64,000 nucleotides of DNA from Corallochytrium limacisporum Hawaii (GCA_002811645.1 PDIP01000082.1:11305-75304), one strand, 5' to 3'. Shown: positions 28,550-37,524, counted from the stretch's first letter. Translations and numbers: made by a program. The notes: generated by a model from the sequence alone, not told the origin.

Positions 28550-31500
28550 ATGAAGACGAGGTTCTCAAATTTGGACCTTCGGGCGATTTTGCCTGAACTA
28601 CGGTCACGATTGAATGGGTTGCGTCTGGCAAACGTCTACGACCAAAATGACAGAACATACCTCTTCAAGTTTTCTGGACAGGAGGGTCATAAGGAGCACT
28701 TGATCATTGAGAGTGGTCTTAGGATCCACCTGACACAGTACAGTCGTGATACAGGACAGATGCCAAATGCATTTAGCATGAAGTTACGCAAACATTTGCG
28801 GACATTACGTATCAATGACATTGAACAATTGGGTGTAGATCGTGCTATCGACATGTGCTTCGGGTATGGTGACAAAACATTCCATCTGATCATCGAGTTC
28901 TACGCAGCTGGCAACGTAATTCTCACCGACGGCGGGTATGTGATTTTAGCTCTACTGCGTACCCACAAAGCCAGCGGCGGTGAAGACGGCAATAACACGC
29001 ATGCTACATACGCTGTGCGCGAGGTATACCCGTTCAGTACAGCGAGAGTCAGCGATGATGTTGACTATGTTGCATTAGCGACGAGCGGAGAGGCCTTGCT
29101 GAGTGCTCCTGTGCAAGAGGGAGGCACGGACAAGAAGAGGAAGAAGAAAGGGCAATCCAATACGCTCAAGCGCTGGTTAACGATGGAGACAGAATTGGGT
29201 GCTGCGTTGGTGGAGGACGCATTAGTTCGGTCGGGTATTGATGCCAGTATGGATGCTGTCGACTTTATTCGTCAGAATCAGGGTGGTGTCCAAGGAGCCA
29301 TAGAGACCCTGAAGCCGTCCATCTCATGGGCTCTTGAACGCTTGCGGCAAGTTGATTTGCAGATCAGCAAAGGTTACATCTATTGTATACCTGCGCCTGT
29401 CCATGCTAGTGATGGCCCTCAGGAAGTGTACGAAGACTATGAGCCCATTGATCTCCAACAGAACACGGGAATGATCTGTAAGGACTTTGACACATTCAAT
29501 GCCGCAGTTGACGAGTTCTACTCCAAGCTAGAGGCACAGCGCAGTGATCTTAAGGCCATGCAGCAGGAATTGAACGTACAAAAGCGATTGGAGAGGCAGA
29601 AGGAGAAGTTACAGGAGAATCTGGACGAGTTCCAGAAGCACCAAGACGACAACCGTGTGAAGGCCACTATGCTTGAAGAAAACATTGATATTGCAGAAAA
29701 GGCACAATTGGTTATCAACTCCTTCATTGCTAATGGTATGAGCTGGAGCGAAATTGATCGGATGCTCCAGGAAGCAAAGGCCAAAGGAGACCCTACCGCT
29801 TCCTATATTCACGCCCTAAAGCTTGAGATGAACACGATCACTTTGCGTTTCCAGTTAGGAAACAATAACAGTGAGGACAGTATGAGTGACAATGATGAAG
29901 AGGAGAATGAGATTAGTGACGAGGACGAAGCACAAGCCAATTCAACGGTAGGACAATCAATACCGGAGGCTCAAGACGCATATATCAGCAGTGCAGACCG
30001 CAAGAAAATGGCCAAGAGGACACAAAGGCAGAATCAGAGTGCTAAGCGAGGGAACAAGCGAAGCAACAAGCTCAGTGCTCAAGAGCAGTTGCGGCAGCAG
30101 GGTATTGTGTTGGTAGACTTGGACCTTGGTCAAACCGTGTATGCAAACATCCGACGATATCATGATATGAAGAAAGTGGCTAGGAAGAAAGAGGAAAAGG
30201 CCCAAGATGCAACGGAGCAGGCTATGAAAAACGCGGAGAAGAAAGCCATGCAGGCATTGAAGGAAGTAAAGACTTCCAATGCTGTGCAGAAAATGCGCAA
30301 ACCTTTCTGGTTTGAAAAATTCTTGTGGTTTATTTCCAGTGACAACTACACTGTGGTTGCCGGCCGCGATGCGCAACAGAACGAGTTGCTAGTCAAGCGC
30401 TACCTGACCAAAACTGATGTATACGTCCATGCCGACATTCACGGTGCCACAAGTGTGGTCATTAAGAACCGGGTCACAGCCGGTGATGCCACCCCAGAGG
30501 AGCTACGTATCCCACCACGTACCCTCTACGAAGCGGGAACGATGGCCATGTGCCACTCTAGCGCATGGGATTCCAAAATTGTAACCTCAGCATATTGGGT
30601 GTACAGCCATCAAGTGAGCAAGACTGCCCCGTCAGGCGAATATGTGTCGACGGGAAGCTTTGTGATTCGTGGAAGAAAGAACTACCTTCCCCCATCCCAG
30701 CTCATCATGGGATACACTCTACTATTCCGCGTAGACGACACATGCATTGCTCGCCATTTAGGTGAGCGTAACGCCAAGGGTGTGGAGACCGAAAGTGAGA
30801 TTAGTAGCGCCCCCACAAACCCGGACCAGGACATAACTCACGAGGCTGTGGAATCTATGGATTCTGTACATGGTGACGGACATGGTACAGATGACGAAGA
30901 GCTCGGGGATCCTGCTGTGCTAGAAAATGGGATAGCCGATGATGAAGACAATAATGAGGACTCAGACTCCGACATTGAACTACCGGATACAGACCTGCGC
31001 ATGCAGCCTATTCTTGCGACGTCGACCCAACGGCAGGACGCTGACACAGATATCTTAGGGGAGACCTCTGCACAGGCCACAAAGTCAGTCTTTGATAAGT
31101 ATAACCTGTCCGAACAAGCTGATCACAATGAGGAAGATGATCATGATGAGCTTCCAGAAGCTCTTGCTCAACACATGAAGCTCGCGAAAGACACGGACAG
31201 CGGTGATGCGGAAGTAAACACCAAGAAGGGAGGCTATATCACCGCCAAACAGAGACGACTGATCAAGAAATACGGGCCCCAAGCTCTGGAAAATGAAGCA
31301 GAGCTCATGGCTAAAATGGACGAGGAGGAGGAGGCTGATACTGTTCATGTCACGCGCGGTATGGAAGTTGGACAGAAGAAGGCTACACTACCTCCACCGC
31401 CGCTCAAACGGGGTCAAAAGGGCAAGAGGAAGAAGATGATGGAAAAGTACAAGGACCAGGACGAAGAAGATCGCCGTCTGCGCATGCAGTTACTGAACCC

Positions 31501-32224
31501 TGACGGTAAACAAGGTGGATCAGGTGTCGACGACGGCGAGGACGACTGGAGCCTGTCAAAGAGCAAAGGAGGAAAAGGCAAGAAAAAAAACAAAAAGGAC
31601 AAGGGTAACAAGGCCAAGCAGATGCAGGAGACTCAGGCCAAGGCCCAGGAAAAACCTGAGGAATTGCGGCGCAACCTACCCCTGCCTGTCCCGAGTCCCG
31701 CGGAGCTGAGACAGCAGCAACAGGAGAAGAAGAAGCAAGAGCAAGAGCAGAAGAAGAAGGAACACGAGCTGGCCATGAGGACAAGCGGAGAATCCGAGAA
31801 GCTCTGTGCCGCGAATGAAGAGGAGGATGTAAAGAAAGTCCTAAAGGAGGAGGGCATTGAATTTCTTTCAGGCGAAGTTTTGCAGTCTCTGGACCAGATT
31901 GATGCGCTTACTGGTATGCCGTTTAACGACGATATCATGCAATATGCCCTGCCAATGGTTGCACCTTATGCCACGGTCGTTAACAACAAGTTCCGCCTGA
32001 AGGTCACTCCGGGCAGCCAGAAGAAAGGTAAGGCGGCACAATCGATAGTCCAAAGCTTCTTGCGCCAGAAAGATTGCACAGCACAAGAGAAGGACTTGAT
32101 CAAAGCCATCCGTGACCAGGACCTCATCGTTGGACTTCCCGGCAAGATTCGCGTCGCCGGTGTAGGTGTCACAGGCGGTGGTGCGAAAGGTGGCAAAGGA
32201 AAAGGTGGCGGAAAGAAGCGCTGA
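28550..32224 (+). CDS. NEMF: Ribosome quality control factor NEMF/Rqc2
   Basis: MKTRFSNLDL start, FSMKLRKHL, LGVDR, IEFYAAGNVILTD (NFACT-N); FWFEKFLWFISSDNY, GRDAQQNELLV, YVHADIHGA, QVSKTAPSGEY (NFACT-R); PMVAPY..KVTPG (NFACT-C). Asp9 and Asp97/Arg98 correspond to the Rqc2 CAT-tailing residues. Confidence 0.97.
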   Translation: MKTRFSNLDLRAILPELRSRLNGLRLANVYDQNDRTYLFKFSGQEGHKEHLIIESGLRIHLTQYSRDTGQMPNAFSMKLRKHLRTLRINDIEQLGVDRAIDMCFGYGDKTFHLIIEFYAAGNVILTDGGYVILALLRTHKASGGEDGNNTHATYAVREVYPFSTARVSDDVDYVALATSGEALLSAPVQEGGTDKKRKKKGQSNTLKRWLTMETELGAALVEDALVRSGIDASMDAVDFIRQNQGGVQGAIETLKPSISWALERLRQVDLQISKGYIYCIPAPVHASDGPQEVYEDYEPIDLQQNTGMICKDFDTFNAAVDEFYSKLEAQRSDLKAMQQELNVQKRLERQKEKLQENLDEFQKHQDDNRVKATMLEENIDIAEKAQLVINSFIANGMSWSEIDRMLQEAKAKGDPTASYIHALKLEMNTITLRFQLGNNNSEDSMSDNDEEENEISDEDEAQANSTVGQSIPEAQDAYISSADRKKMAKRTQRQNQSAKRGNKRSNKLSAQEQLRQQGIVLVDLDLGQTVYANIRRYHDMKKVARKKEEKAQDATEQAMKNAEKKAMQALKEVKTSNAVQKMRKPFWFEKFLWFISSDNYTVVAGRDAQQNELLVKRYLTKTDVYVHADIHGATSVVIKNRVTAGDATPEELRIPPRTLYEAGTMAMCHSSAWDSKIVTSAYWVYSHQVSKTAPSGEYVSTGSFVIRGRKNYLPPSQLIMGYTLLFRVDDTCIARHLGERNAKGVETESEISSAPTNPDQDITHEAVESMDSVHGDGHGTDDEELGDPAVLENGIADDEDNNEDSDSDIELPDTDLRMQPILATSTQRQDADTDILGETSAQATKSVFDKYNLSEQADHNEEDDHDELPEALAQHMKLAKDTDSGDAEVNTKKGGYITAKQRRLIKKYGPQALENEAELMAKMDEEEEADTVHVTRGMEVGQKKATLPPPPLKRGQKGKRKKMMEKYKDQDEEDRRLRMQLLNPDGKQGGSGVDDGEDDWSLSKSKGGKGKKKNKKDKGNKAKQMQETQAKAQEKPEELRRNLPLPVPSPAELRQQQQEKKKQEQEQKKKEHELAMRTSGESEKLCAANEEEDVKKVLKEEGIEFLSGEVLQSLDQIDALTGMPFNDDIMQYALPMVAPYATVVNNKFRLKVTPGSQKKGKAAQSIVQSFLRQKDCTAQEKDLIKAIRDQDLIVGLPGKIRVAGVGVTGGGAKGGKGKGGGKKR

Positions 32225-32383
32225 ATTTCCGCGGTCTTGAGAAGTCATGATCTCTCTCAATTCTTGAACTTATCTTGTTTTAATGATGTTTCTAGTAGAC
32301 TATAATACAGTGTTTTGTGATGGATATGATTATGACGACGGGATGCAACACGGTTTCAGATGCACATGCTATTTCTTGCGGAA

Positions 32384-35300
32384 TTACACCATGTCTTCAG
32401 CTTTCTCATCACGGGTCAGCAGATTCGTGGACTCCTCGGACTCTTCCTCATCCACTTTCATGGGGACCACGGCTGAGAGGATGATGCTGCTCCGACGCCG
32501 CTGTGGCTGGCGAGTCAGCCAGAAAGTCTTGTGGCTGCCACGGCCCTTGATCTCTACAGTTCCGCGTTCCTGTAGAAGGAAACCACCCTGCATACGGCCC
32601 AGGTTCTGGCGCACTGCGTCCGACACCTGAATGCGACTGGGTTCGGAAGTAGATTCCATGCGACTCGCGATATTGACAGCATCACCGATGACAGTGAAGC
32701 GTGGCTTCTTAACGTCACCGAGCAGACCGGCTACGCATGGACCAGCGTGGATACCGATGCGTAGCTGAATATCAGGCAGGACTTGGGCCACAGACTGAAG
32801 CACTTCAACAGCAAAGCTGCACACGCGCAGGGCCTGTTCCTCCGGGCTCACGTTACGATCCGGTACACCGCTAGTGGCCATGTACGCATCACCAATCAAT
32901 TCCATGCGGTAGATATTGTGCTGTCGAGCTAGCTCGTCCATCTCGGCGTACAACTCGTTCAAGGTGTTGATGACCTCAAAGGGTGGCCGCGCAGAGCAGT
33001 ACTTGGTGAAGGCCACAATGTCAGAAAAGAAGATAGTGGCCATGTCGTAGTTTTCGGGGACACACGGGTTGCCATTTTTCAGGTTCGCAGCAATTGAAGA
33101 AGGCAGTAGCGAGTTCAGCAGGGTGTCTGCGCGTTCCATTTCGGCATGCAAAAGAGCTGTGCGTTTGCGGACCGATTGTTCTAGATCTTCTGTGTAGGTG
33201 TGGAGCATGGTGGTTATCTTGTCAGTCATGCACTGTTGGGCATCGGGCAGTTTCTCCATGACGATCTTCAACTGCTCAACCGTTGGTCGAGACTCTGGGG
33301 CGGCAGACCAGCAAAGCTGCATGGCCTTGCAGTAGAGATTGCGAGCCTCACTACTCTGCACCTCAGATTCCTCGTTCTCGTACACGTTACTGGCATACTC
33401 CATTAGCGTGGACACATCGACGACCTCTTCAATGGAACCCACACTAGGACGTCCACGGCTCCAGTAGCCACGTCCCCGACGATCGCGGTGGCCAGTGGCT
33501 CCCTCGTCCGATCCGAACTTGTCGCCCTTCTCGCCATCGGCGTAGATTGTATCTGCATCGGAGTGATAGCTCATCTGGCGCAGGGCCGTGCGGTGGCGGT
33601 TTGTCGGTCGACGCATCGGCACAGTGGGTCGCATGTCTAGCTTTGCCACAGACTCCAGGAGAATAACTACCGGGGACTTGCCCAAAGGACCTACCTCAGC
33701 GGCCAGTGGACTACTGCGCTGGCGCACAGCGGACTGGTTGTTGCCGCCAGTGCTCTCTTCAAAGGCACTGTCCCTACCAACACTCTCTACGCCAGAAGCC
33801 AGCAGGGCATTCTCTAGGTAAACACCGGAAGTGGCATTCAGCAGCTCACTGTGAGGTTCTTGGTGGCGCAAAAGGTGATAAAGAATCATGGACATTGAGA
33901 ACATATCACCTTCCTTGGTGGGCTCAATTGTTAAATCACCCAGCTTCTGCTCCAGAGTTTTCTCCTTCTTCGGAAGCTTCTCCAGGCCTGCACTGCTCTT
34001 CTTGCGGCTAAAGAAGCTGTTAGTGCCGAAAAGACTGGTGCGAGGGCCACTGCGCCGGCTAGTGAAGCTGGAACGCGACATTGGGTAACTGACGGAGCTC
34101 TCAGGGGTAGTCATGGCAGGCTGCAGAGTGGAGCAGACACTTCCAGAGGCCGATTGCCGTGTCGGCACAGCCGTGTTGCGCGCCGCGTCAGACAAGTACG
34201 CAAAGTCCACCGTGTCCTCCTGCAAAAACCCGGCATCGGTGCCTTCCGATTCCTGATGCTCCGTAAAGACATGCGCGTATAGTTCCGGAGCGGACCACAT
34301 TAGGATATCCACGCCTTTGACATGACCATCGTGGCTTTCGTAGTCACGTACGGGCCTTCGGTCTATGGTCAAGTCGGGGTCAAAAATAACCAGGCGCAAG
34401 TTTTGGTTGACCTGGCAGCAGTGCGAGTTCAGGCGACCATGAGCACGGTTAAGCACGTTGTGCAGGTAGTCCATGCCCGAAATCAGATCCATGGCCATGG
34501 AAAGGGAGAAACGCCAACCCAGCGACAAGACACTGTCCTTTCCGAGAGAAATGTAGGAGGACAAGGTACCCTTCATTCCGGAGAAGTCAGACACAAAGCA
34601 CAGGGTCTCGGGGTCCATATCGGTGTTGATGCCGAAGAGAGTCATCAGGCATGGATTGCTGTGGTGACGGAAATCGTACAACATCTCAATATCCTTCTCA
34701 GATATGGTTGTGCCCTTGCGAGATATTCTACGAAGTATAACACGGCTCCCACGGAACTTGCCACACAGGTAGTCGGTGCCATTCACTGTGGACAGATGGC
34801 CACTATTCTCGCTAGCCATGCCGTAGTCCGACTCAGTCAGAATATTGCTGTTTTGATTGCCAAAGGCGGGTAGGGCACCAAGGGAATTGCGGCGCTCGCC
34901 ACGGAGAGGGTGAATCAGAGCGGGTACAGCTGTAGCACTGAGCTCCGAGTCGGCGGAAAGTTCGCATTCGTTCCTGTTCTCTTCGTTGTTGTTGTTGTTG
35001 TTGCTGCTACTGCTACTGCTTGCCTTACTGGGTGATGACTCTGCAGAGCTGGAAGATTCGGCCAGGTTCTGGTTGTTTGCAACTGACGATGACCTGATCA
35101 GCTCTTGGTTGTCGACTGACATCCTTCTTGGTGCGACTTCCTGGGTTTCGCCTGCCAGGCGGATGGCTCCCGCAACCATAGAATCATCGGCCGGATCCAG
35201 GTGTAGCATGTGATTTTCTGAGCCCTGCACAACAGCGATGTTAGTCAATTTCTGGAGCTCGCTTGCCTTGATGTTGTAGTTGAACTTGTTCAAGGCTTCA

Positions 35301-36805
35301 GCGCGCACACGCCTTCGCCGTTGCCTCATGAACAGGAATACGGCCACACCAGCCAGGATCAAGAGGACTGAAAGAGGAACCAATAGGAACAGCAGCATCA
35401 TGGAAAGGTTGTCATCGTTCTGCTGAGGCTCAGGTGTCCCAGTTTCCGTGGGAGTAAACTCTTCTGCGGAAGCCGAATACACAGAAAGCTGCGGTTCGCC
35501 AGTGTCGCCCACGCGACAGCGCATCTGAGATAAAATGCGCTTAACCAGTTTCTGTGTCCGCTCCTTCAGCGGCCTCGATCCAATTTCCTGCAGAATGGCC
35601 TGAGCCTCATTGCTCTCAAAAGTGAAGAGTATGGCGCGAGTCACGGCACGCAGACGATCACAGGCTGTGACATGCCGCTCCTCGTGCTCTTCGTGGGCTT
35701 GATCATCAGTGAATAGAACGGGCATCACCATGTGCAAGCAGGTCTGGATTGGGTATTCACCAAGGATCTCCGAGCCCACCTTTACTGGCTGCAGAATCAT
35801 GGGCACTTGGGAGGCACTATCAAATCCTGGTTCCTGAGCGTAGGCAAGATCTGTCCGAGTGTCCTGGAACGGAAGCTCCGACACTGACTGTACCCACGGA
35901 CCGGATAGAGGGATCAGATACGCACTGTGGTTTAGTGGCTGTGTCTGTACATCTGATGAAAAGGCAGACGGGAAGTGGTAGGTGCCACCAACATCCTGCA
36001 CGGCAGCCGTGCGAATGTCGTCAAAGCTCAGGTCAAAGTTGTGTACATTCAATACCGAGATACCCACGTAGCCCAGTGTGTACGGCATGTCCTTCACCGC
36101 TTCCATCATGCGAGTGGAACTGCCTGTCTGAAGGTGCGGCTCCACGAGGCCATTGCTGATGTCCTCATGGAGGTCTCGCCCGGTGTACAGGTTGAGAGAC
36201 TGTGTGGTACCCGCTCCTTGTGTTCTGACCACCAGCATGATCTCCTTCTCCGGCAACAAATTTGCAACTTCGTCGGTAGCCTGATCAGCAACTATACGGG
36301 GATCATTCCACATGGTGATCTCTCCGCTGAAAATTCCAGAGACTGTATCCCGACTGAATCTCACGCTGCCACCAAAGCGAGAGCTATTGGCATCTGTGGC
36401 CCCGTCTTCAGGTATGTGTGTCCCTAACAGTTCCGGAATGTTGTAGACCATTCCTGTCGGAGTTGTGTATATGGGCAAAACTGCTAACTGCTGTTTCGCC
36501 TCATCGTACATTTCCTGTGTTAATGGTAGTGATGTGAGTGCAAATGTGGCCGTTCCCTGCACCATCTCTGTTAGTCCCTGACTCGACGTCGACGGATCGT
36601 ACACCATAGATACACTCTCTGGTAGGAACAAACTGGGCCAAGTACTTAAGAAACCCAGGGCCTGTGAAGAACCGGCCCCAATAATATCCCAGCTGTTACT
36701 ACGGGGTTCTCTGGTGTGTAGGACAGGTGCTGCCGATACATGACATATTGTGCTGACCGCCACCCACAGTCCGAAACGGACCATGGAACTATTGTGTCCT
36801 GGCAT
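32384..36805 (-). CDS. Receptor-type nucleotidyl (probably guanylyl) cyclase: signal peptide, PstS-like ectodomain, TM, kinase-homology domain, signalling helix, class III cyclase
   Basis: PstS-like IIGAGSS...IFSGEITMWNDPRI...VVRTQGAGTT; TM LLFLLVPLSVLLILAGVAVFLFM; pseudokinase DLISGMDYLH..AHGRLNS, WSAPE, GDMFS, CWSAAPESRPT; EMERADTLLNSLLP; TIFFSDIVAFT, MELIGDAYM, RIGIHAGP, GDAVNIASRMES, IKGRG. Confidence 0.92.
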   Translation of the reverse strand: MPGHNSSMVRFGLWVAVSTICHVSAAPVLHTREPRSNSWDIIGAGSSQALGFLSTWPSLFLPESVSMVYDPSTSSQGLTEMVQGTATFALTSLPLTQEMYDEAKQQLAVLPIYTTPTGMVYNIPELLGTHIPEDGATDANSSRFGGSVRFSRDTVSGIFSGEITMWNDPRIVADQATDEVANLLPEKEIMLVVRTQGAGTTQSLNLYTGRDLHEDISNGLVEPHLQTGSSTRMMEAVKDMPYTLGYVGISVLNVHNFDLSFDDIRTAAVQDVGGTYHFPSAFSSDVQTQPLNHSAYLIPLSGPWVQSVSELPFQDTRTDLAYAQEPGFDSASQVPMILQPVKVGSEILGEYPIQTCLHMVMPVLFTDDQAHEEHEERHVTACDRLRAVTRAILFTFESNEAQAILQEIGSRPLKERTQKLVKRILSQMRCRVGDTGEPQLSVYSASAEEFTPTETGTPEPQQNDDNLSMMLLFLLVPLSVLLILAGVAVFLFMRQRRRRVRAEALNKFNYNIKASELQKLTNIAVVQGSENHMLHLDPADDSMVAGAIRLAGETQEVAPRRMSVDNQELIRSSSVANNQNLAESSSSAESSPSKASSSSSSNNNNNNEENRNECELSADSELSATAVPALIHPLRGERRNSLGALPAFGNQNSNILTESDYGMASENSGHLSTVNGTDYLCGKFRGSRVILRRISRKGTTISEKDIEMLYDFRHHSNPCLMTLFGINTDMDPETLCFVSDFSGMKGTLSSYISLGKDSVLSLGWRFSLSMAMDLISGMDYLHNVLNRAHGRLNSHCCQVNQNLRLVIFDPDLTIDRRPVRDYESHDGHVKGVDILMWSAPELYAHVFTEHQESEGTDAGFLQEDTVDFAYLSDAARNTAVPTRQSASGSVCSTLQPAMTTPESSVSYPMSRSSFTSRRSGPRTSLFGTNSFFSRKKSSAGLEKLPKKEKTLEQKLGDLTIEPTKEGDMFSMSMILYHLLRHQEPHSELLNATSGVYLENALLASGVESVGRDSAFEESTGGNNQSAVRQRSSPLAAEVGPLGKSPVVILLESVAKLDMRPTVPMRRPTNRHRTALRQMSYHSDADTIYADGEKGDKFGSDEGATGHRDRRGRGYWSRGRPSVGSIEEVVDVSTLMEYASNVYENEESEVQSSEARNLYCKAMQLCWSAAPESRPTVEQLKIVMEKLPDAQQCMTDKITTMLHTYTEDLEQSVRKRTALLHAEMERADTLLNSLLPSSIAANLKNGNPCVPENYDMATIFFSDIVAFTKYCSARPPFEVINTLNELYAEMDELARQHNIYRMELIGDAYMATSGVPDRNVSPEEQALRVCSFAVEVLQSVAQVLPDIQLRIGIHAGPCVAGLLGDVKKPRFTVIGDAVNIASRMESTSEPSRIQVSDAVRQNLGRMQGGFLLQERGTVEIKGRGSHKTFWLTRQPQRRRSSIILSAVVPMKVDEEESEESTNLLTRDEKAEDMV

Positions 36806-37224: not shown

Positions 37225-37524
37225 NNNNNNNNNNNNNNNNNNNNNNNNNNNNNNNNNNNNNNNNNNNNNNNNNNNNNNNNNNNNNNNNNNNNNNNNNNNN
37301 NNNNNNNNNNNNNNNNNNNNNNNNNNNNNNNNNNNNNNNNNNNNNNNNNNNNNNNNNNNNNNNNNNNNNNNNNNNNNNNNNNNNNNNNNNNNNNNNNNNN
37401 NNNNNNNNNNNNNNNNNNNNNNNNNNNNNNNNNNNNNNNNNNNNNNNNNNNNNNNNNNNNNNNNNNNNNNNNNNNNNNNNNNNNNNNNNNNNNNNNNNNN
37501 NNNNNNNNNNNNNNNNNNNNNNNN
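37225..37524. other. Assembly gap
   Basis: Run of N. Confidence 1.

Follow-up and report, generated by a model that had tools for sequence, protein, structure and literature searches.

Receptor guanylyl cyclases (receptor GCs) and the RGC pseudokinase group have been treated as essentially metazoan. A 64,000-nucleotide stretch of the Corallochytrium limacisporum Hawaii genome (GCA_002811645.1 PDIP01000082.1:11305-75304; called the window below) raises the question of whether a unicellular holozoan carries a receptor of this kind with a different sensor. An initial annotation of the window had read positions 32384–36805 as a receptor GC with an ectodomain resembling the bacterial phosphate-binding protein PstS, and had proposed a receptor for phosphate or a related anion. 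An RGC-like module in a deep-branching unicellular holozoan, without an ANF_receptor domain in its genome, would date the cytoplasmic module before animals, and a different ectodomain class on such a module would show that the sensor domain is exchangeable. To our knowledge, extracellular phosphate sensing by eukaryotic cells is still poorly understood.

The locus holds a genuine gene, native to a unicellular holozoan, that encodes a single-pass receptor GC. Its ectodomain has a PstS-type fold, i.e., that of a type II periplasmic binding protein (PBP), and not the ANF-receptor fold, while its cytoplasmic half is, by sequence comparison, of the animal receptor-GC type.

Reading frame and domain order

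The frame is open over 4422 bases, with no stop codon and no N or assembly gap inside it, and a protein of identical length with the same three Pfam families is present in a public collection. The order given in the initial annotation (ectodomain, transmembrane helix, HGR pseudokinase, signalling helix, class III cyclase) was confirmed by the open reading frame (ORF), by Pfam and by alignments to animal receptor GCs. The motifs quoted there all lie where they had been placed: GAGSS at amino acids (aa) 43–47, YDPSTSSQG at 69–77, YNIPEL at 121–126, IFSGEITMWNDPRI at 158–171, VRTQGAGT at 193–200, HGRLNS at 789–794 and LLNSLLP at 1229–1235. The features of the gene, in window coordinates, are:

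32384..36805 (−), whole coding sequence: single ORF of 1473 aa plus stop, no intron
36731..36805 (−), predicted signal peptide, about aa 1–25: hydrophobic core FGLWVAVSTICHV, then SA/AP (read by eye from the sequence)
35471..36694 (−), PstS-like Venus-flytrap ectodomain, about aa 38–445 (Pfam, TIGR00975, phmmer, AlphaFold model, Foldseek, Atlas)
36530..36532 (−), codon of Ser92, at the position of PstS Asp56 (alignment A1)
36206..36229 (−), anion-loop motif VRTQGAGT, aa 193–200, equivalent to R135–T141 of E. coli PstS (columns of alignment A1)
35327..35407 (−), single transmembrane helix, aa 467–493, then RQRRRR on the cytoplasmic side (read from the sequence)
34805..35326 (−), juxtamembrane region, aa 494–667, rich in Ser, Asn and Ala (composition; no Pfam match)
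33242..34804 (−), kinase-homology domain (KHD; pseudokinase), aa 668–1188, with two large inserts (Pfam, alignment to animal GCs, motif alignment A4)
33059..33241 (−), signalling helix or dimerisation linker, aa 1189–1249, ending LLNSLLP (C-terminal match to HNOBA; alignment A2)
32513..33058 (−), class III nucleotidyl cyclase domain, aa 1250–1431 (Pfam Guanylate_cyc; alignment A2)
32387..32512 (−), C-terminal tail, acidic and basic, aa 1432–1473 (sequence; no family match)

The Pfam search suggested in the initial annotation matched all three of the families it named, i.e., PBP_like_2 at aa 40–262 (E 8.6e-16, 58.9 bits against a cut-off of 27), PK_Tyr_Ser-Thr at aa 704–845 (E 1.6e-8) and Guanylate_cyc at aa 1250–1431 (E 1e-50). 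The C-terminal helix of HNOBA was also matched at aa 1189–1242 (E 8e-4, below the Pfam cut-off). One hydrophobic stretch (aa 467–493, read from the sequence) lies between the ectodomain and the KHD, and this region aligns with the transmembrane region of a paralogue.

The paralogue is found on contig C231 (L017:1863-6626; G000:C231 ~190863-195626), is 1588 aa long and shares this layout. Identity to the window's protein is 45% in the linker and cyclase and 27% in the KHD, with further similarity in the membrane-proximal part of the ectodomain and in the transmembrane helix. Its KHD reads HGRLNPHSC, and its cyclase has the Glu/Thr pair of base specifiers and a full catalytic set in a single chain. 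The ectodomain gives only a weak match to the PstS profile (hhalign 58.8%, E 9.4e-5): it is a strongly degenerate PstS-like domain with large inserts, in which the R-x-D-G-S-G-T anion loop has been lost. Its structural model is of low confidence (predicted local distance difference test, pLDDT, 62.5), and PstS is still the best structural match.

The base composition of both halves of the window's gene (GC and GC3) falls within the range of the adjoining eukaryotic housekeeping genes, and its neighbours are eukaryotic, encoding eIF2B, an Alg9-like mannosyltransferase, a UCH protease, NEMF, a methionine aminopeptidase and a homeobox protein. Two public runs from 2015 hold pieces of the gene as contigs of low depth, which match the genome exactly or almost exactly and are colinear with it, without joints, consistent with an intronless gene. 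Depth over the 3′ end of the neighbouring NEMF gene is several times higher in these runs, which would fit RNA and proves nothing.

The ectodomain and its altered pocket

The claim that a type II PBP of the PstS kind stands in place of an ANF receptor was borne out by Pfam, phmmer, structural modelling, Foldseek and Atlas, all of which agree. The match to the NCBIfam PstS equivalog TIGR00975 (E 2.7e-18) scores 66.1 bits, far under the cut-off of 205, and phmmer of the ectodomain against PDB sequences returned PstS proteins only (best E 3.8e-6). The pairing of motifs with PstS, first made by eye, was reproduced by HMMER alignment to solved PstS chains. The AlphaFold model, whose input alignment comprised 84 sequences made of PstS relatives, has a mean pLDDT of 78.9 and a predicted TM-score (pTM) of 0.81, with an insert of ~45 residues (~aa 289–335) modelled at low confidence. 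The domain does model as a PstS-type fold, the outcome on which the initial annotation had staked its case. All of the 49 highest-ranking Foldseek hits in the PDB are phosphate-binding proteins of the PstS, PhoX or DING kind (best match 8ods, E 1.4e-19; TM-score by target 0.72–0.82 among the best 20). The Atlas fold search led to PBP_like_2 clusters, including a chytrid 7tm_3 + PBP_like_2 cluster that spans model residues 6–433. The hinge motif IFSG.IT.WNDP.I is strongly conserved in the ectodomain; the membrane-proximal helices, flanked by two Cys, are also conserved.

The cage of E. coli PstS is taken here to consist of T10, the backbone NH of F11, S38, D56, R135, S139, G140 and T141, with D137 salt-linked to R135. 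Its equivalents were read from the columns of alignment A1, in E. coli PstS numbering, and compared with 70 single-domain homologues:

T10: S47, kept (conservative)
F11 (backbone): Q48, kept (backbone contact)
S38: S74, kept
R135: R194, kept
G140: G199, kept
T141: T200, kept
D56: S92, changed
D137: Q196, changed
S139: A198, changed

Counted as five, the positions kept are S47, the backbone at 48, S74, R194 and G199/T200. Among the homologues, the three changed positions are occupied by Asp or Glu (position 56, 67 of the 70; position 137, 62) or by Ser (position 139, 61). Asp56 is the sole acceptor in the PstS cage and is regarded as the residue that favours protonated phosphate over sulfate. 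With Ser, Gln and Ala at these three positions, phosphate specificity is doubtful. PDB titles record the E. coli PstS mutants D56N and D137N/G/T as crystallised with phosphate, so that single changes need not abolish binding. Judged by these residues, phosphate sensing by the altered pocket is possible. Of the receptor first proposed, the PstS-type fold and the animal-type GC half both hold, and it is the specificity for phosphate that is put in doubt by S92, Q196 and A198.

Profile searches across the genome, covering the assembly of 24,109,830 bases (24.1 Mb), gave 14 cyclase-domain matches and one match to PBP_like_2. There was no match to PstC (TIGR02138), and the ectodomain is therefore not a subunit of an ATP-binding cassette (ABC) importer. 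With bacterial PstS, a component of PstSCAB, it shares the fold, the order of lobes, the hinge motif and the five cage positions. It differs in being covalently anchored to a transmembrane helix and signalling module, in a genome without PstC, in the replacement of Asp56, Asp137 and Ser139, in the ~45-residue insert, and in an extended membrane-proximal part.

The cytoplasmic half and relatives in other protists

A word-index search with aa 660–1440 returned animal receptor GCs first (ANF_receptor + kinase + cyclase; 38–40% identity, E to 2.9e-65), with bacterial PAS/GAF cyclases coming after them. Among PDB sequences, the two closest, NPR1 (E 2.8e-67) and GC-C (E 8.8e-65), both match in two stretches; adenylyl cyclase 5 comes next (E 4.7e-43). 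Pairwise comparison with a receptor GC of Capitella is colinear, with 27% identity (55 bits) in the KHD core and similarity that runs on through its C-lobe tail into the linker and cyclase (40% identity). Over this C-terminal tail, linker and cyclase, identity to animal receptor GCs is 38–40%, and the linker is colinear at 40% identity with the receptor GCs of Capitella and Athalia (alignment A2). The colinearity with animal membrane GCs described at the outset, running from the HG.L..S..C loop of the pseudokinase through the signalling helix to the cyclase, is well founded.

The catalytic loop of the KHD reads HGRLNSHCC, as against HGNLKSSNC in animal receptor GCs (alignment A4), and HG.L..S..C is common to both. 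HRD has become HGR, the Asn of the catalytic loop is missing, VILRR stands for VAIK and FDP for DFG, and APE is kept; the losses in catalytic motifs (HGR, FDP and Arg for the VAIK Lys) make this domain a pseudokinase. In the cyclase, the metal-binding Asp residues D1262 and D1306, the Glu specifier E1302, and R1349, N1378 and R1382 all occur in one chain, so a homodimer should carry two complete sites. Adenylyl cyclases carry Lys where Glu1302, the GTP-type specifier, stands. Cyclic GMP (cGMP) is the likelier product, going by these residues. The juxtamembrane region contains poly-S and poly-N runs and sits where animal GC-A has its phosphorylated juxtamembrane segment; by analogy, it may be a regulatory phosphorylation region.

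With animal receptor GCs (NPR1/GC-A, GC-C; the RGC group) the protein thus has in common the single-pass topology, HG.L..S..C in place of HRD, the C-lobe tail, the signalling helix and a homodimer-competent class III cyclase. It differs in its type II PstS-like ectodomain, where theirs is ANF_receptor (type I PBP), in Thr rather than Cys as the second base specifier, in the large inserts of the KHD and the Arg for the VAIK Lys, and in its host, the RGC kinase group having been described as mainly metazoan (PMC8449880). ANF_receptor (PF01094) has no match at E ≤ 0.001 in the 24.1 Mb assembly, despite the presence of two RGC-like pseudokinase-cyclase genes.

For the ectodomain, a word-index search with the full-length protein returned only the protein itself, and one with the ectodomain alone gave five distant PstS proteins (27–28% identity), which are uninformative on fusions. 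Searching exhaustively with the ectodomain gave 524 proteins at E ≤ 0.001, the long ones being eukaryotic receptors. The best match is Chromosphaera perkinsii P0034 (EukProt; E 2.6e-17), and single-domain proteins follow at 7.6e-12 or weaker. P0034 is 2386 aa long, with four PBP_like_2 domains, Ephrin_rec_like repeats and a part resembling a transient receptor potential (TRP) channel. Three of its four PBP_like_2 domains were tabulated; the cage is full in two, and the third has Ser at the D137 position. From this arrangement it is a candidate phosphate-gated or phosphate-sensing channel of a unicellular holozoan.

Fabomonas tropica P0042/P0183 carries two tandem PBP_like_2 domains, a kinase and a cyclase, and a transcript from Logan (P0056; L026:116-4240, SRR24908191) has the same layout. 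PBP_like_2 is joined to 7tm_3 in a Blyttiomyces protein and one further protein, and to ANF_receptor in a protein of Rigifila, and the long receptors found also include proteins of Entosiphon and Diplonema. Most of the PBP_like_2 domains in these receptors have a full phosphate cage, with examples in Fabomonas, Chromosphaera, Diplonema and Rigifila. Atlas feature searches added eukaryotic clusters of PBP_like_2 + kinase (Discosea), and a Chlorophyta kinase + cyclase cluster named for a phosphonate-binding protein. The uniqueness implied by the initial annotation is therefore not upheld, since the PBP_like_2-kinase-cyclase layout occurs in Fabomonas and the Logan transcript, and PstS-like ectodomains are used by other types of protist receptor.

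The Fabomonas and Logan proteins share with that of Corallochytrium the order of PstS-like ectodomain, transmembrane helix, kinase fold and cyclase, as well as the Glu/Thr pair; Thr at the second specifier is thus common to these cyclases, the Corallochytrium protein and its C231 paralogue. They have two tandem PstS-like domains, at least one with a full cage, where the Corallochytrium protein has one. Their kinases keep the catalytic Asp (HGDLKSLNI in Fabomonas, HRDIKSPNV in Logan) in contrast to HGR, and score 26–27 bits against its KHD, compared with 55 bits for the animal KHD; the cyclases are 29% identical to its own. By their residues, they are better candidates than the Corallochytrium protein for coupling extracellular phosphate to cGMP.

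Class C G-protein-coupled receptors (GPCRs) of the 7tm_3 type in chytrids and Plasmodiophora likewise use a PstS-like ectodomain as the sensor of a eukaryotic receptor, and differ in their output, a seven-helix GPCR instead of a cyclase. PBP_like_2 on class C GPCRs has been recorded in Spizellomyces (PMC3251606) and Plasmodiophora (PMC4815078). The receptor cyclases of Acanthamoeba and giant viruses have an extracellular receptor domain and one transmembrane helix, with kinase and cyclase inside, in another order: the cyclase is placed between two kinase domains (PMC4053784), as the initial annotation had stated. A literature search, in which most subscription journals lay outside coverage, found no paper on a PstS-pseudokinase-cyclase receptor or on Corallochytrium cyclases. 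The suggested search for the architecture thus had a divided outcome, with the same domain order found elsewhere and no description found in the literature covered.

A quick tree of 84 PstS domains (LG+G4) unites the eukaryotic receptor domains in one clade (SH-aLRT 96). In the free search, the Corallochytrium domain fell on a long branch (1.25) beside this clade and not within it. A tree constrained to hold it with the eukaryotic receptor domains was 44.9 log-likelihood units better (p-AU 0.84), showing that the free search was incomplete. On this sequence evidence, the ectodomain most likely belongs to an old eukaryotic family of receptor domains and is not a recent bacterial import. Recent transfer from bacteria was considered separately and judged unlikely, given that the best match is holozoan (Chromosphaera) and the composition native. 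A cyclase tree of 27 rows, from which the Fabomonas cyclase was left out because an insert splits its match, paired the window's protein with its paralogue (support 97/95). Grouping with the Logan protein was weak (80/89), with long branches, and the relation to animal receptor GCs, rhodopsin-GCs or the Logan protein was not resolved.

Proposed signalling, possible origin and genome surroundings

The domain order, the PstS fold, the state of the pseudokinase, the catalytic set in one chain and the relatedness of the cytoplasmic half to animal receptor GCs are established. The account of function favoured here, to which as a whole a probability of about 0.5 is given, is that of a PstS-derived, oxyanion-type receptor driving cGMP synthesis through a dead kinase and a homodimeric cyclase. 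The two-lobed Venus-flytrap ectodomain would bind a small extracellular ligand, most likely a tetrahedral oxyanion, with a specificity altered or relaxed compared to PstS and with phosphate as one candidate. Closure or re-orientation of the ectodomains in a homodimer would be passed through the single transmembrane helix to the catalytically dead KHD, and from there via the coiled signalling helix to the homodimeric class III cyclase. The resulting cGMP would be read by the many cyclic-nucleotide (cNMP)-binding proteins of this genome, in which cNMP-binding domains occur in at least 10 genes. These genes are counted in support of the account, together with the paralogue of the same layout, the native composition and the housekeeping neighbours; ligand class, direction of regulation, dimerisation and the nucleotide made are inferred.

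Several observations weigh against this account. The Asp56, Asp137 and Ser139 equivalents are all lost, a combination absent from the 70 single-domain homologues compared, which makes high-affinity phosphate binding doubtful and a ligand-less domain conceivable. The fold model leans towards PstS, its input alignment being of PstS proteins, although the sequence homology is significant by itself. Arg in place of the VAIK Lys leaves ATP binding by the pseudokinase uncertain, and Thr1371 stands as second base specifier where animal GCs have Cys, so that nucleotide specificity can only be inferred. Transcription is unproven, as both 2015 runs are only guessed to be RNA and the junction of ectodomain and transmembrane helix (35380–35870) is uncovered. 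The same gap in coverage, no contig of the two runs spanning 35380–35870 around the transmembrane helix, and the run of N 420 bases upstream of the start codon are what could be cited for an assembly or gene-model artefact fusing a PstS-like gene to a cyclase gene. Such an error is scarcely credible with a frame unbroken for 4422 bases without N, a paralogue on another contig that is colinear in membrane-proximal ectodomain, transmembrane helix, KHD and cyclase, and independent PBP_like_2 + kinase + cyclase proteins in other organisms.

The changed cage can be read in two other ways. A dedicated high-affinity sensor, reporting the availability of extracellular phosphate as cGMP, would agree with PstS being the closest family by both sequence and fold, with the retention of R194, S74, G199, T200 and S47, and with the phosphate held in crystals of the E. 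coli D56N and D137 mutants (PDB titles). It is an unlikely reading, as Ser stands where PstS has the acidic residue that discriminates protonated phosphate from sulfate, Ser139 is Ala, the score against the PstS equivalog is 66 bits where the cut-off is 205, and the relatives with a full cage in Fabomonas, Chromosphaera, Diplonema and Rigifila are better candidates. Conversely, the ectodomain might be a degenerate, ligand-less scaffold or dimerisation module, with control exerted from inside, as in some animal orphan GCs, by phosphorylation of the Ser-rich juxtamembrane region, by ATP or by partner proteins. Three lost cage residues and a long branch in the domain tree (1.25) would fit this, and the paralogue, which kept its layout after losing the R-x-D-G-S-G-T loop, indicates that the fold survives without an anion site. 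Most of the cage and the hinge motif IFSG.IT.WNDP.I have nevertheless been kept after long divergence, suggesting selection on the pocket, and the scaffold reading is considered rather doubtful. It is quite improbable that the protein is not a GC, making cAMP or both nucleotides or being active only as a heterodimer with the paralogue: Thr1371 in place of the animal-GC Cys speaks for this, against which stand the GTP-type specifier Glu1302, the complete catalytic set within one chain in both the protein and its paralogue, and the place of NPR1 and GC-C as nearest solved relatives, with E-values over 20 orders of magnitude better than those of adenylyl cyclases.

As for the origin of receptor GCs, on which the initial annotation had considered the locus informative, its relevance is plausible and the two trees (27 cyclase rows, 84 PstS domains) leave the matter unsettled. 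One speculative reading, which we hold to be improbable at present, is that the pseudokinase-cyclase module of animal RGCs descends from an older, eukaryote-wide receptor with a PstS-like ectodomain, a TKL-like kinase and a Glu/Thr cyclase. Fabomonas, with an active kinase and intact cage, would then have retained the older state, and Corallochytrium could represent an intermediate, its kinase dead and RGC-like and its ectodomain PstS-derived. The ANF-receptor ectodomain would on this reading have come in later, by a swap confined to the animal stem. If this reading were true, sensing of extracellular phosphate or oxyanions via cGMP would be the ancestral job of the receptor class.

Several protist lineages have PstS-like ectodomains coupled to cyclases, kinases, class C GPCRs or TRP-like channels, pointing to a broader and so far unstudied group of PstS-based receptors in eukaryotes. 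These protist proteins are concrete candidates for phosphate receptors, with those of Fabomonas and Chromosphaera, which have intact cages, ahead of the Corallochytrium protein. Corallochytrium can be transfected, making the hypothesis testable in the native organism.

Downstream of the receptor gene, the NEMF/Rqc2 homologue (28550–32224, plus strand) is convergent with it, and the two stop codons are ~160 bases apart (window 32224–32384), so the 3′ untranslated regions of both genes must be very short or overlap. An assembly gap of 300 N (window 37225–37524) begins 420 bases upstream of the receptor's start codon, and the promoter region is therefore incomplete in the assembly.

Three other cyclase genes of the genome have distinctive layouts. 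At L021:2805-6362 (minus strand; G000:C235), an ORF of 1186 aa has a dCache/PDC-type sensor (E 4e-8, under the Pfam cut-off) followed by a cyclase domain, by its domain matches a bacterial-style extracellular sensor on a eukaryotic cyclase. The 2088-aa ORF at L024:3305-9568 (plus strand; G000:C230) has two cyclase domains and a cNMP-binding domain near the N-terminus, and may be a cyclic-nucleotide-regulated cyclase of the twelve-helix type. The third, at L018:3987-8231 (minus strand; G000:C184), is an RA-LRR-PP2C-cyclase, the layout of fungal Cyr1-type adenylyl cyclases, here in a holozoan.

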